From the NCBI GenBank assembly GCA_002269645.1, contig NIVC01004334.1:1-50025 (forward strand): 50,025 bases of DNA. Reading direction: 5' to 3'. This DNA comes from Macrostomum lignano (Eukaryota). Positions 20,884 through 27,560 of this stretch are shown here, piece by piece. The stretch's first letter is position 1. Every line of letters begins with the position of its first letter. Made by a program: the position numbers and the translations under genes. Below the pieces are notes generated by a model. The model saw only the letters and a program-made list of their open reading frames with translations, did no database searches and had not been told where the DNA came from.

Positions 20884-21090
20884 TATCATCATCATCATCA
20901 TCATCATCATCATCATCATCATCATCATCATCATCATCATCATCATCATCATCATCATCATCATCATCATCATCATCATCATCATCATCATCATCATCAT
21001 CATCATCATCATCATCATCATCATCATCAATCATCATCATAATCATAATATTAATAATAATCATCATCATCTTCATCTTCTTCTTCTTCA
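20884..21090 (-). repeat. (GAA)n-(GAT)n-(TAT)n-(GAT)~48 tail of LINE copy A
   Basis: Directly follows the short 3'UTR of the element on the minus strand. Confidence 0.9.
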
Positions 21091-24000
21091 ACCGTTTTGT
21101 CGCGGCGTACGTGCCCTGCGAGCCACTATTCTCCTCTGCACTTTTTCCTGTGACGCGCCATGTTCGTCAAGGCTAGCATCTTTCCACAATCCGGACACGG
21201 TCCGGTCTTGCTCCTATACACGCGGGCTGTTACGTTCTGCTCCTCTGCTACCTGTTGTTCCTCGTGCTGTCTGCAGTTCCTCCTGTGTCTGGATAAGTTC
21301 GATTTAGAGACGGTTTTTCCACACGCATTGCAGGTGATTCGGCTTCCTTGCACCTCTTCCCCGCGGCATGCCTTCATGTCTTGAAGTCCCCGCCGCACTT
21401 CGGGCACGGCAGACTGGCTCTGGTCATCACGTGGTGCATGCGGCGCTGGTGCACCGCAAGGCCTCCTCGAGTGGTCTCCTCTTCATACCATCTCAGTGTT
21501 CTGATTGCACGTTAACTAGTTCCGTTCAAGATCGAGTTCTTCAACCTTAGCGTTTCTTAGCAGTTTCTTCCAGAACGAGATGATGGTCTGTCTTCGGTGC
21601 TTCGCTTTCCGAACTCCTTCTGGGTCTTTACTCCATCCGAGAACGCACTGCTTCGCTAGGTTGTCATCATGGTAGCCGTAGCACGTGCCCCATTCTCCTC
21701 CAGTGTGCCATCTCAATTTTTGTTGAGATGCTGGTGACTCTAAGATCGTCGCGGACATCCCCGCTGTTGGCACCTTTCTCTTTCATTTCTTTTAGAGGTG
21801 GCTTCGTCTTGCTGCTCCATACGTAACGATATAAGCGGTCCACCGTTTTCTGGAGCGTTTTAGTTTCTGACTTATGGAAAAGCCTGGCGCCGCAGTTGAA
21901 GAGCATGGTGCTCTCGACGCAGGCCTCAACGATCCTAGCTTGGGTTCTCTTAGTAAGTCTAGTCTTTCTGAGCATGTTCCGAACTCCGGCTAATGCTTTC
22001 GGGGCCCTCTGCAATCTTTGTCCAATATCATTTTGCGTCCTAGCCAGGTGCCGAGCATCCGTATGTTGTTACTGCTTTCAGTCCCCAGGACAGCGCTCTC
22101 TTCTTTGTCATCGTTAGTAATTTCCTCGAATTCTTTCATCACCTCCTTTATAATTTTTGTTCCTCGCTCAATTTCGTTCGTAGCTCCGATAATCGTTGTA
22201 TCGTCGGCGAAGAGAGAGCACGACACGGTTTTCGTTGTCGTCTCCTCATTGAATTTATCCAATCGTTGCGGGGGGAGGCTATGCCCTGAACGACAAGTCC
22301 AGCGGATTCCAGCTATTTCGCCGTCGCTAATAGCCGCGGTTTTTCTCCCTTTCTCAGCAAGGCGTATTGCTGCTTGGTGATAGACGTTAAAGAGTATCGG
22401 GGAAGTGGCGCATCCTTCTCTTAGACCACACTGGGGTAGAAGGGTGTGCTCTCCTCGTTGTCCGATATGACTACGTCGTTTCCTCGTGCAGGTCTTTGAT
22501 CTTGTCAATAATTCTCGTTGGCATTCCAGCAAGAAGTTGCCAAAAGTGTATGCTTTACGTAGGTCAAGCAGCTTGATACTGGAGTCCAGGTTGTCGGTAT
22601 GGTCCGGGCTGTCGCGCAGTTTGCTGGCGTCCTCGTTGAGGCGCCAGATAATCTGAGTGGCGTCCATTGTAGACCGGCCACTGCGGAAGCCTGCCTTGTT
22701 CTCATCGAGTGCGCCAATGTTTTCTGCCCATGCGCTGATTCTTGTTGCTAGGATCCTTGCGATTATTCTGCTAACTAGCGGTAGCAAGCAGATGCCCCTG
22801 TAATTGTTCGCGTTGGCTTGGTCTCCTTTTTTGAAGAGCGGGATGATTTGACTGATTTTCTGATTCTCTCTCCAGTCTTTGGCTGGTGAGTTCCCCAGAT
22901 GGTGGATTTCCTTTCTGAGCGATGTTTTCGCCTCCTCACAAGCTTCCTTGATGTACCTTATTCTTACTCCATCAATTTCTGGTGCTCCGTCTTGAATCTT
23001 CATCCATTCCCTCTCGATTTCTTCGTCTTCTAGCGGTGCGTCTAGCTTTTCGTTGGCGTATCTAACCGTCATGCTGTCCGGTTCGTGAGCTCGTTCCGTT
23101 CTGAGTATGCTTTCTTTGATCAGTTCAGGGGGGTTCTCGTATCGTGAGGCTTGTAAAGTTTCTAGATGGTCTTTAAAATCTTCCGCCAAGAAGAGTGGTG
23201 ATGCTTTGCTACCATTTGCGTTTTGTTGTGTCGCTCTTCCCATCTTCCGCAGACAGTCGTACATCTCTGCGATGTTGCCACAATCACAGTGGTGTTTACA
23301 TTTATCGGCAATGTTGACCCACCAAGCATCTTCCCATTCTTGCAGCTTCGTTTTCTTGATCTGTCTGCACACTCTAACGTGTTCGATTGCTGTCGCGATC
23401 CTTGTCGTGTTCTGGTCATCGTCAGGAGACAGGCGTGCACGATCTCTCGCTTGGTCCCGGGCGCTGAGGGCTCTAGCGAGGTTGATGTTGAGCTCCTTCA
23501 GTTCCTCCTCATGTCCAACCATCCAGCTGTTGGTTTGTCTGGTTCTCGGTCCGCATATTTCCATTGCGTTTTCAAGTAACTTTTTTCGGTCATTTCCCAG
23601 TTCATTGCCTCGTCCCTTTCTCGATTTGGTTCGGCTGTCTCTTCTGTATGTTCAGGTGTTGCTAGCCTCCCCTCTGTCTTCTTCCGAAAACTCTCTTTCA
23701 CTTCTGGGTCACGGAGTCTAGTCCATTCGACCTGTTTGGTCTTTGGTCCTTTATGTTTTTGATTATTGTTGGTGTTCCTGGCAGTGGGCTGCTTGATGGC
23801 GGTGCCTGGTAGCACAGACAACACTTTCGGCAAGTGGTATGATAGCAAGGTTTCCGAGTGGTCTGTTCAGATTCGTCTCACCATTTTGTGACGGTCTTCC
23901 TTGCGCATGGCAAAGCCATCCAACTCGTACCAGGTGCCCGTGCGGGGGTGTTTCCAAGTTTCGGGTTTGTTCTGGTGATAGTAAGAGCTGACCCACACCA

Positions 24001-24935
24001 TCCGTATGCTTTCCAACCAGGTTAGGAGGTCGGCGCCTTGTTGGTTGGTCAGGCCTTGGCGGAAACTCCCGGCGCTTCCATACTTGTGATGCAGTCTTTT
24101 TCCGACGTTAGAGTTTCAGTCACCTCCGATGATCATTGGTGAGTTTTGACCTATGGTGTTTAGCAAACGTTCAATTTCCGTACAAATGATTTCCATGTCT
24201 TCTTCGTAGGCTGGACTGTCTTTGATTGGTTGGTAGATCGTCATCACCACTGCTCCGCCAATTTCTATTGCAAGCGTTCTTTCTTGTGGGTGCATTTTTC
24301 TTCCTTGCGAGGTCCATAGGGTCCAGGCGGTGTTCCTTAGCAGAATGCCCACCTTCTGTGAGAATATTAGGTGGCAATCCTCGCCATCGCAGTGATAAGT
24401 TCTAATGCCTGTCGATTTAGTGTCGAGTTCAGTGAATAACGTTAAGTCCCATTTCCGTTAAGCCAGCTTGACCATCTCACCGAAATGCCCCGACATGATG
24501 TTAGCCCTTTGTGCGTTCTAGATGGCGATCTTGATTGACTCTTCTTTCCAACGTTTTTCGGCCAATTCCTGTGTGTGTGTTCTTCTTGTTGTTCTGCGTC
24601 TCTCCCTGCGCTTCTTCTTTCTGGCTTACCTGGCTCGGTTCTGTTGTCTTGTTCTTGGTCCAGGGTTCTTTTCGATCGTCTGGAGTCTGCTAGCGATCTC
24701 ATTTGTCACTCTTCTTTCCTCTTCCCTCCTTCTTTCTGTCCTCGCGGGGTTTTTTTCACGTAGATCTTGTTTATAGAGGTGCCAGGGTCCGTTAATCCCT
24801 GGCCACTCTGTCGAGGGAAGGTTTGCCCACAGCTGTCAGAGGTTAGTCTGACTCTGTGGGCCTCTCCCCCCCCGAATGCCTCTTTGCCAACCATTTGGGC
24901 TGTCCACTCGGCACCTCGAGAAGGTGGAACATTCT
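21091..24935 (-). mobile_element. Near-full-length, inactivated APE-type non-LTR retrotransposon (RTE-like), copy A: 2A-like motif - APE - RT - zinc fingers
   Basis: APE motifs KIAI*N, LFTEL, TIYQP, IIGGD*N, HPRTGTWYELD. RT motifs NYRGICLL, AGFRSGRST, DLRKAY, GLREGCATSPILFN, LFADD. RTE-like MGHVLRL. C-terminal C/H fingers. Several stops and frameshifts. Confidence 0.92.
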
Positions 24936-24944
24936 TGCCGAACC

Positions 24945-25321
24945 ATCATCTTCATCATCATCATCATCATGATTATCATCATGATCATCATCTTCTTCTT
25001 CTTCTTCTTCTGCCCTTTTCTCGCGTGGGACCCCGTTAGGTCGGATGGTTAGTGGTGAGCTCCACAACTTTTTCTGTGCCGTGCCAAGTTCGTTGCCGCT
25101 ATCTCTCTTCTCTCTCTTCTATCTTTATCGCTCTCCTTACCTCACAATCGGTGTGTTTGGCCTTGTGTTTTTCGACGTCCGGGTCGGCTACTTCCGTCCG
25201 TCGTTTAGAAAAAGGGCCGGTGCGACAGTCCGGGGTTTCTCTCGTGGCTGTCGTCCGTGCGTCTTCTCCCTTGCAGACTCTTTGCCAGGAGTTGCCTCCC
25301 GTCCGCTGGCCACCTCGAGAA
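24945..25321 (-). mobile_element. Short internally deleted family member, copy B (5' end fused to last zinc finger + 3'UTR + tail)
   Basis: Shares TTCTCGAGGTG and TGGCAAAGAG colinearly with the 5' end of copy A. Ends EIAATNLARHRKSCGAHH*, then 3'UTR and a (GAA)n(GAT)n tail at 24945-25012. Confidence 0.7.
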
Positions 25322-26992: not shown

Positions 26993-26994
26993 AA

Positions 26995-27410
26995 TCTTCT
27001 TCTTCTTCGTCCCGTTCTCGCCCGGAGGGCATGGGACACCGAGAGCTACGTGCCTCTGCACGTTCTTTTGTGTCTTGCCATATTAGTTTTGGACAGCTCC
27101 CGACCACAGTCTTCACACTTTGCTGTCTCTGCACGATACTTTCTAGCAGCTGTCCGACCCGTCTGGTTGTCTCCTGTTGTTGTTGCCCTTGTTGTCGCCG
27201 TTAGCGTTGCCGTCGCCGGTGTGGTCGTCGATGTTCCTCTCTCTTGACTTTCGATCGCGACTGCCGCTGCCCCTCTGCATGTTCGCCTGTGCCTCGCCAG
27301 ATTGGATTTCGATACCATCGTCTCGCATCTGGTGCACCTTACTGTTTTGGCATTCATTTCTGTTTCACCTTGGCAAGTCTTTCTGTGGTTGAGTAGTGTC
27401 GCTTCTTGTC
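26995..27410 (-). mobile_element. Severely 5'-truncated LINE, copy D (zinc-finger region, 3'UTR, (GAA)n tail)
   Basis: QEATLLNHRKTC, CTRCETMVSKSNLARHRRTC and CEDCGRELSKTNMARHKRTC, homologous to copies A and C. Confidence 0.85.
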
Positions 27411-27414
27411 GTCA

Positions 27415-27560
27415 TAATCTTCTTTTTCTTCATCATCATCATCATCATAATTATCATCATCATCCTCCTCATCATCACCATCATCATCATCATCACCATC
27501 ATCCTCATCATCACCATCATCCGCACCATCATGCTCATTATCCTGGTCATAATTATCATG
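27415..27560. repeat. Degenerate (ATC)n microsatellite, probable original target or older tail
   Basis: Imperfect CAT/CAC/CCT triplets abutting the 5' junction of copy D. Confidence 0.8.

Follow-up and report, generated by a model that had tools for sequence, protein, structure and literature searches.

A 50,025-nt stretch of the Macrostomum lignano genome (contig NIVC01004334.1 of assembly GCA_002269645.1, positions 1 to 50,025; hereafter the window) carries on its minus strand a stack of long interspersed nuclear elements (LINEs) that are joined to one another by triplet repeats. The stack probably consists of four dead copies, named A, B, C and D, which belong to four lineages of one family of retrotransposons without long terminal repeats (non-LTR), of the apurinic/apyrimidinic endonuclease (APE) type, and which all landed in one (GAT)n microsatellite. 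It is likely that GAT repeats are the preferred landing sites of the family, since relatives in other animals show the same habit; this is a preference and not a strict specificity. The family is a new example of a known behaviour, that of the microsatellite-preferring LINEs.

Read along the minus strand from 27560 to 20885, the order is degenerate (GAT)n, D, C, B, A and finally (GAT)64, beyond which unique DNA starts at 20884 (Table 1). All four copies have the same orientation and only (GAA)n and (GAT)n serve as joints between them. The tract upstream of D is what remains of the target microsatellite on the 5' side, and the long (GAT)n after the tail of A is its 3' part. The perfect (GAT)n runs of at least five units in the window are all inside the stack, and all of them read GAT on the sense strand of the elements. 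No further copy of the family was found in the window outside the stack. The order, strand and coordinates of the array, as they had been given in a first-pass annotation of this DNA, were confirmed by sequence, Tandem Repeats Finder (TRF) and pattern location. Likewise, the four last-finger peptides quoted there were all found in the list of open reading frames (ORFs) and in the alignment.

Table 1. Features of the stack in the window and 5' ribozyme candidates (HDV, hepatitis delta virus; RT, reverse transcriptase)
Feature	Position	Strand	Basis or remark
Degenerate (GAT/GGT/GAG/AAT)n	27432..27560	-	upstream of stack; TRF period 3, 34 copies, 82% matches
GAAGAAAAAGAAGATTATGAC, 5' copy of the 21-mer flanking D	27411..27431	-	regular expression; 20/21 identical to 27008-26988
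Copy D	27009..27410	-	ORF list; tblastn to family proteins; Pfam finger-type matches
GAAGAAGAAGAAGATTATGAC, (GAA)n tail of D and 3' copy of the 21-mer	26988..27008	-	adjoins truncated 5' end of C
Copy C	25408..26987	-	5'-truncated inside RT
Tail and microsatellite after C: GAAGATGATGAT(TAT)4(GAT)4 AAC (GAT)11, decaying to AAAGATAGAGATAAAGA	25322..25407	-	sequence, TRF
Copy B	25011..25321	-	bipartite, internally deleted; local alignment to ends of A and C
Tail of B, (GAA)6(GAT)n	24944..25010	-	stops exactly at first base of A
Copy A	21090..24943	-	full length, dead
HDV-like self-cleaving ribozyme candidate	24874..24943	-	nt +1 to +70 of copy A
Tail of A, (GAA)4 GAT GAA (GAT)4 (TAT/TAA) units, then long (GAT)n	20885..21089	-	TRF period 3, 64 copies, 94% matches
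Ribozyme candidate, locus L002	3407-3486		relative
Ribozyme candidates, locus L003	3179-3256, 7238-7315		relative
Ribozyme candidate, locus L004	3913-3992		relative
Ribozyme candidate, locus L006	4993-5068		relative
Ribozyme candidate, locus L036	4207-4280		relative
Ribozyme candidate, locus L005	~3166-3250		relative

Copy D is 5'-truncated and retains only the zinc-finger region (ORF 27357-27046, 103 codons without stops) and the 3' untranslated region (UTR), with the 3' UTR box GGCGAGAACGGGAC at 27022-27009. Its tblastn match to the family proteins (27411-27052) shows 35-41% identity. Copy C contains the C-terminal half of the RT with the C-terminal domain (ORF 26906-25950) and the fingers (ORF 25803-25453); it has suffered two frameshifts and has its 3' UTR box, GGCGATAAAAGAGCC, at 25428-25414. 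In copy B the first ~210 nt align locally to the 5' end of A (ribozyme core and 5' UTR, with the GTAGCCGACC box), and the last ~110 nt comprise the last finger (IAATNLARHRKSC) and the 3' UTR with the box GCGAGAAAAGGGCA at 25024-25011. The ribozyme remnant of B is devoid of the first ~21 nt, i.e. the 5' strands of helices P1 and P2. B had been described as a copy stacked with a tail of its own. The stacking and the tail are indeed there, but the copy is an internally deleted derivative of a 5' and a 3' part and not a plain truncation. Only A has all the parts: the ribozyme candidate, a 5' UTR box (~24795), a 2A-like motif, APE (~24451-23630, with in-frame stops), RT (Pfam RVT_1, 22829-22047), the C-terminal domain, the fingers (21407-21126) and the 3' UTR box GCGACAAAACGGTT at 21103-21090. 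At least five frameshifts were counted in A in addition to the stops in the APE region. All four copies are dead or incomplete.

A, B, C and D are four diverged lineages of one LINE family. Between the DNA of A and C there is a single 52-nt blastn match only, and over the C-terminal region of the RT the two proteins show 52-54% amino-acid identity. Identity falls to 34-43% between the finger regions of A, C and D, and the 5' truncation points are unlike as well: D has the fingers only, C starts inside the RT and A is full length. Because the DNA does not align and the proteins of A and C are only ~53% identical, the array is no tandem duplication of one copy; the divergence claimed in the first-pass annotation is borne out by blastn and by protein identity.

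The family was followed beyond the window with the RT ORF of A. This search returned ~80 proteins in ENA and JGI assemblies (32-51% identity, E <=1e-26) and also a Convolutriloba (acoel) protein, followed by a sharp fall to other LINEs. An exact-protein lookup for other M. lignano copies of the family found none. Fifteen related loci were read; related loci are cited here by locus number.

At these loci, the link to GAT repeats recurs. About 12 of the 17-18 readable 5' junctions adjoin GAT-type repeats, all in GAT sense, and the 143 kb of related loci contain no more than five perfect (GAT)n runs of at least five units, each of which abuts an element end on the sense strand. Several deep lineages with unlike tails of their own lie in or beside (GAT)n, always GAT-sense. 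In L003, unique DNA is followed by (TGA)19 and then by two full-length copies, head to tail. In L004, a solo (ATG)8 precedes TTTAGGAGTCAG, a full-length copy and the same 12 nt again on the 3' side (16 nt counting a shared GATG), which places the insertion at the margin of a repeat that was already there. L036 has (TGA)19 on its 5' side, its own (ACAAG)4 tail and (GAT)14 on its 3' side. L001 has (GAT)13 directly 5' of a 5'-truncated copy, and in P0117 a gene call passes through poly-Asp, i.e. (GAT)n, into the ribozyme candidate. Stacks of unlike lineages recur in other genomes, too: in L013, L033 and L034 the 5' end of an L003-type ribozyme candidate stands directly after the tail of an L001-type copy. 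The tail-to-head stacking that had been proposed from the window is thus found again at these three loci and at L003.

It might be argued that such elements insert at random and merely survive in repeat-rich, gene-poor DNA. A published review gives such an account for Waldo-A/B near CA repeats in Drosophila, and it would suit the tandem-repeat-rich neighbourhood of the stack as well as the M. lignano genome, with its unusually high simple-repeat and transposon content. For the present family this passive accumulation is barely credible. The junctions are base-precise to (GAT)n and the orientation is always GAT-sense. L004 and L036 each have one copy at one (GAT)n tract, and their DNA is otherwise unique. 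Other types of microsatellite at the same loci, such as the very long (TA)116, (CA)76 and (TG)143 tracts downstream of the L002 element, carry no 5' junctions of this family.

Some points weigh against a (GAT)n-directed landing, however. Most of the evidence for the preference comes from relatives found in ENA and JGI assemblies, with one M. lignano locus examined, and the related loci were chosen through protein matches and not by random sampling. The junctions between B and A and between the two copies of L003, where a tail meets nucleotide +1 of the next copy, could stem from template jumping in a single event. Five relatives (L002, L005, L006, L038 and L039) lie in ordinary DNA outside (GAT)n. 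The targeting of a triplet repeat, as first proposed, is supported insofar as (GAT)n occurs at the junctions of relatives far beyond chance, but these five elements exclude a strict specificity.

The L002 element is a full-length copy that breaks the RT ORF of an unrelated LINE (L002, 2355-3406) at ...ACAAGAAGGAA| (...QWMKFLLIPLYKKE|). Target-site duplications (TSDs) of 6-13 bp can be read in three of the remaining four: approximately ACTGTT in L005, a clean 13 bp in non-repeat DNA (GTGAAGTACCRGG) in L006, and GGATGTACGA, which contains GATG from its second base, in L039. The 5' boundary of L038 is not placeable, so that this locus gives no TSD reading. Because the TSD of L039 contains GATG and that of L004 begins with it if the shared GATG is counted, there are hints that the nick or priming site may be a short GATG-type motif, of which (GAT)n would be the tandem run.

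The earlier proposal also held that the family regenerates its target as its own tail. This does not agree with the tails themselves, which are of several kinds: the window copies, L001-L003, L006 and L038 have (GAA)n, L004 has (GATGC)3, L005 and L036 have (ACAAG)n, L007 and L039 have (CAGAA)n, and L037 has (ACG)5. The (GAT)n is largely the flanking target and not the element's own tail.

Nevertheless, the tail might act without any sequence preference of the protein, if the (GAU)n at the 3' end of a read-through RNA paired with a nicked (ATC)n. The (GAA)n(GAT)n at the 3' ends of the window lineages and of L001-L003 would allow such an annealing. In L004, the tail (GATGC)3GATG shares its GATG with the start of the possible 16-nt TSD, and for RTE-type elements a correlation of the tails with the first TSD base has been published. 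RNA-tail annealing alone is still a rather unlikely explanation. L036 has an (ACAAG)4 tail and yet lies inside (GAT)n, the (CAGAA)n tail of L039 has no homology to a TSD with GATG from its second base, and L006 combines a pure (GAA)16 tail with a TSD that is not GAA.

The 5' junctions of C and D have the 12-mer GAAGATTATGAC in common. The observation itself, made in the first-pass annotation, is correct, but the 12-mer is part of the 21-mer that is found on both sides of D (20/21 identical). It is therefore probably better taken as the TSD of D than as a recognition motif, and the 21-mer at 27411-27431 is probably a TSD or an older tail. TSDs of 10-16 bp occur at other loci of the family. On the simplest view, D arrived later than C and entered a tail-like tract that adjoins C on its 5' side; the 21-mer repeat would then be the target duplication of D merged with its (GAA)n tail.

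A less likely alternative is that the 21-mer represents the defined 3' end of an RNA that was used twice in template jumps. More generally, the stack or part of it could have been made in one integration, with the RT jumping between RNAs and generating a chimeric head-to-tail complementary DNA. The precise junctions of a tail with nucleotide +1 at B|A, between the two copies of L003 and in L013 would be expected from such jumps, as would the same ...GAAGATTATGAC before the truncated 5' ends of D and C. Furthermore, A and C are similar in their density of disabling mutations, so that their ages are indistinguishable. However, end-to-end template jumping predicts that all copies but the 5'-most are full length, and both C and B are truncated. 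A TSD of D accounts for the 21-mer just as well, and the solo insertions at solo (GAT)n tracts (L004, L036) and the varied pairs of lineages at different loci would need targeting anyway. A template-jump origin is hence quite improbable.

The same can be said, with more force, of a stack that arose from fewer insertions by tandem duplication, by unequal crossing-over between the microsatellite tails, or as an assembly artefact. Duplication may contribute elsewhere in the family, since the two copies of L003 are 89-96% identical in protein and L037 is a regular array of near-identical units. As the origin of the four copies in the window it is rejected, as the copies have no DNA alignment, 34-54% protein identity and unlike truncation points. 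Units that are so different could be neither collapsed nor expanded during assembly; only the microsatellites of 50-200 bp are open to mis-joining. The array in L037 (745-8083) consists of four head-to-tail units with a period of ~2.2 kb, which are devoid of the APE region and each end in (ACG)5; after the last tail, one more unit begins and extends for its first ~60 nt. These units look like a tandem amplification more than a serial insertion.

The anatomy of the family can be derived from its intact relatives. The complete element is ~4 kb long and has a short 5' UTR and a single ORF, which encodes APE (PF14529/PF03372), RVT_1 and three to four C-terminal C2H2/C2HC fingers. Five full or near-full proteins gave no Pfam match to RNase H at E up to 0.01. 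Close to the N-terminus of the ORF there is a 2A-like motif, D(V/I)ExNPGP. Its distance from the 5' end is constant, +204 to +236 nt, in seven loci (L002-L005, L007, L013 and L036); it reads TIEKNPGP in copy A (24676-24656, minus strand) and DIEKHPGP in L003. The 3' UTR measures 45-70 nt and contains a conserved GCGAYAAAAG box directly before the tail. A second conserved box, (G/A)TAGCCGACC, lies ~130-165 nt into the 5' UTR. It reads TAACGGACC in copy A (~24786-24795, minus strand) and is also present in B (~25165-25175, minus strand), L003 (+165), L006 (+132) and L005 (+166). The UTRs of the lineages that share this box are otherwise unalignable, and it could be a protein-binding or a translation-initiation element. 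An internally deleted form is known from the relatives as well: in L006 (4980-7270) the ribozyme candidate and 5' UTR are fused directly to the RT, without APE.

The 5' ends of the elements are HDV-like ribozyme candidates, for which self-cleavage is predicted from comparative folding. In copy A, the first 70 nt begin exactly at the base that follows the tail of B and can form P1 (GUUCGGC/GCCGAGU, with a G1.U wobble), P2 (GAAUGUU/GGCAUUC), P3 (ACC/GGU) and P4 (CAGCC/GGUUG), with a C in J4/2. In eight lineages, P1 starts at nt 1, the 5' strand of P2 at 10-11, P3 at 16-21, the 3' strand of P1 at 32-34 and P4 at 42-47. P1, P2 and P3 are present in all eight lineages and P4 is usually present, in the nested double-pseudoknot topology, and the start of P1 is the first base of the element in every case. 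P1 and P2 vary between the eight lineages and yet stay complementary (full covariation), as can be seen in the P1 pairs GUUCGGC/GCCGAGU, GCUCGGU/ACCGAGC, GCUUGGC/GCCAAGU, ACUGGGC/GCCUAGU, GCUUUUC/GAAAAGC and GCUUCUU/AAGAAGC.

The comparison with Rfam is less favourable for a ribozyme. The candidate of A matches three HDV-type models end to end, but all below their gathering scores (RF02682, 28.1 bits versus 44; RF00094, 23.2 versus 50; RF01787, 18.2 versus 37). The 5' end of L002 reaches 21.6 bits with RF00094 (gathering score 50), and the L003-type 5' end gave no Rfam match when the locus was scanned alone. A scan of five whole loci gave no ribozyme match either, with filters that tighten as the search size grows. 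Pseudoknot-free minimum-free-energy folding yielded z-scores of +1.4 to -2.1 and recovered the helices cleanly for L002 only, although this type of folding is uninformative for a double pseudoknot. The stronger evidence for the ribozyme is the comparative covariation.

A structural descriptor matched eight element 5' ends and three other places in the window and eleven related loci. Six of the candidate sequences were used to train a covariance model, which finds other copies of the same family and nothing else above noise in 200 kb, in a test that is partly circular. The model has a weak match to the remnant in B (25314-25261, 12.8 bits) and does not reach the diverged ribozyme candidates of the L005/L036 type. 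A metagenome scan with the ribozyme pattern returned 28 matches, of which only L013, L015, L033 and L034 are real. The other 24 are chance matches in GC-rich, apparently bacterial contigs.

In its layout the family is most like L1Tc/Ingi and Vingi, and membership in this group is our working hypothesis, drawn from domain order and sequence motifs. Like L1Tc/Ingi (Trypanosoma; Ingi-1_AC in Aplysia), it has an HDV-like ribozyme (here a candidate) in the first ~75 nt that would cleave at +1, followed by APE, RT and C-terminal C2H2 fingers. The 2A-like D(V/I)ExNPGP, 40-80 amino acids from the N-terminus of the single ORF, is common to L1Tc/Ingi and Vingi. Tandem copies and TSDs of ~12 bp are reported for L1Tc/Ingi, and bipartite 5'+3' non-autonomous derivatives similar to B are found in the whole group (RIME, NARTc, Vingi-N). 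Such derivatives have been reported only for RTE, Ingi, Vingi and R2; Vingi, a close relative of Ingi, spawns internal-deletion derivatives. R2, RTE, baggins and L1Tc are established carriers of 5' HDV-like ribozymes, which free the element from its co-transcripts, and for L1Tc tandem copies have been published as well.

There are differences, too. Ingi has an RNase H after the RT, and none was detected in the present family. Vingi, the sister clade of Ingi, is not known to have an RNase H, so that its absence would fit Vingi rather than Ingi. L1Tc, Ingi and Vingi end in a poly(A) tail and the present family in a microsatellite tail. A strong association with (GAT)n is not reported for the Ingi and Vingi clades in the literature consulted.

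The family had initially been called RTE-like. It does share with RTE (BovB, lepidopteran RTE, AGAP RTE) a length of ~3-4 kb, a single ORF with APE and RT, a very short 3' UTR that ends in simple repeats, the 5' HDV-like ribozyme (here a candidate), bipartite derivatives and microhomology between tail and TSD. However, the short 3' UTR, simple-repeat tail, ribozyme and bipartite derivatives are found in other clades as well and are not diagnostic. Because RTE is described as APE, i.e. an endonuclease/exonuclease/phosphatase (EEP) domain, and RT only, the designation is not supported by an anatomy that adds a 2A-like peptide and three to four C-terminal zinc fingers. A homology search with the APE domain gave no named RTE-type relatives (e.g. 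CFDP2-like). Comparison of the RT with PDB sequences is of no help for the clade, as the matches are remote (best L1 ORF2p, E 1e-9; R2, E 1e-6).

Microsatellite-specific LINEs are known from several clades. Among those of the APE type, the R1 clade has Waldo (ACAY)n and Mino (AC)n and the Tx1 clade has Kibi (TC)n and Koshi (TTC)n; Dong (TAA)n belongs to R4, a clade with a restriction-like endonuclease. They have in common with the present family that a given microsatellite is entered in a fixed orientation. None of them targets (GAT)n, and the preference described here is not strict. Moreover, the present family combines a single ORF with a ribozyme candidate, 2A and multiple C-terminal fingers. 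R1 and Tx1 are two-ORF elements, and the APE argues against R4, so that the family probably belongs to a clade other than those of the known microsatellite-specific LINEs.

Self-stacking is not unique to this family either. Zepp (Chlorella), HeT-A/TART (Drosophila telomeres) and TRAS/SART in (TTAGG)n all form head-to-tail LINE arrays of one orientation, in which a new copy lands in the repeat or tail beside an older copy. These arrays are telomeric or poly(A)-based, whereas here unlike lineages are stacked in an interstitial triplet microsatellite. R2 resembles what we propose for the present family in that it is target-specific, has no promoter of its own, and is co-transcribed with upstream sequence and freed by a 5' ribozyme. 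It differs in its restriction-like endonuclease, 28S ribosomal DNA target and N-terminal fingers.

The following mechanism could account for the stack. The machinery of the element would nick or prime preferentially at GATG-type sites, and a (GAT)n would be a run of overlapping targets. Each insertion would split the tract and leave (GAT)n on both sides, so that the same tract could be struck again by any lineage of the family and an array of one orientation would grow. The element has no evident promoter of its own and might depend on read-in transcripts from the upstream microsatellite or the upstream copy, which the ribozyme would trim to a precise 5' end for each unit. Release from co-transcripts by a 5' ribozyme has been experimentally shown for R2 and L1Tc. 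Through the 2A-like peptide, the enzyme would be freed of a short leader, and the RT may recognise the box in the 3' UTR. Bipartite derivatives such as B would ride on the same machinery, mobilised in trans. A further bipartite non-autonomous element, of another lineage and stacked upstream of the main copy, may be present in L001 (5535-5945), in the form of a ~300-nt piece that is bordered by a (CTG)10/GAT-like tract and by (GAT)13. At its 3' end (AAAATGGGAAACAA) this piece resembles the corresponding ends of L005 and L039; folding (5600-5905) gave no convincing ribozyme.

It is tempting to ask where the preference resides. That the recognition of (GAT)n is encoded in the protein, plausibly in the conserved array of C-terminal C2H2/C2HC fingers or the APE, and is so ancient that it predates the split of flatworms and other invertebrate phyla, is a tentative and somewhat doubtful proposition. 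If true, this would be the first branch of the Ingi/Vingi-type LINEs that targets microsatellites, with an element that is processed by a ribozyme, lacks a promoter and has triplet repeats as a renewable safe harbour. It may then also help the simple repeats, which are unusually abundant in M. lignano, to arise and to expand. If the preference is encoded in the protein, the fingers or the APE would also offer a natural and experimentally testable case of sequence-directed LINE integration.

With the (GAT)n triplet and probably a new clade, the family joins the short list of microsatellite-targeting LINEs, and its compact, apparently promoterless design (ribozyme candidate, 2A, APE, RT and fingers) is conserved across distant animals. 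The proposed mechanism would be a concrete route for the joint growth of LINEs and simple repeats in a repeat-rich genome. For annotation, arrays of this kind account for clusters of diverged RT fragments that are joined by GAT/GAA repeats, and poly-Asp 'ORFs' over such junctions should be treated as artefacts. In the window (ORFs 20773-21091, minus strand) and at the N-terminus of P0117, gene callers run through (GAT)n and ribozyme sequence and generate artefactual poly-Asp/poly-Met 'proteins'.

Some minor observations concern the surroundings of the elements. Directly 3' of the L001 element, a perfect (AGTACG)n/(GTACTC)n palindrome (8859-8931) scores 51.5 bits with the Rfam microRNA-precursor model MIR8742, below threshold, and is probably a mere inverted simple repeat. 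In the window, the host ORFs comprise an M28 peptidase (NAALADase-like; 13942-15357, plus strand), whose match to a UniRef protein of M. lignano is 100%, and ORFs with cadherin repeats (5844-8045, minus strand), an ML domain (16861-17607, plus strand) and a C2 domain (40019-40963, plus strand). Beside the stack there are four minisatellites that are unrelated to the LINE family, at 28045-28532, 28953-29720, 19814-20200 and 19000-19095. Their units are a 39-mer (12.5 copies), a 42-mer (18.7 copies, with a 123-nt higher-order unit), a 48-mer (8.6 copies, inside a long ORF) and a 27-mer (3.4 copies).

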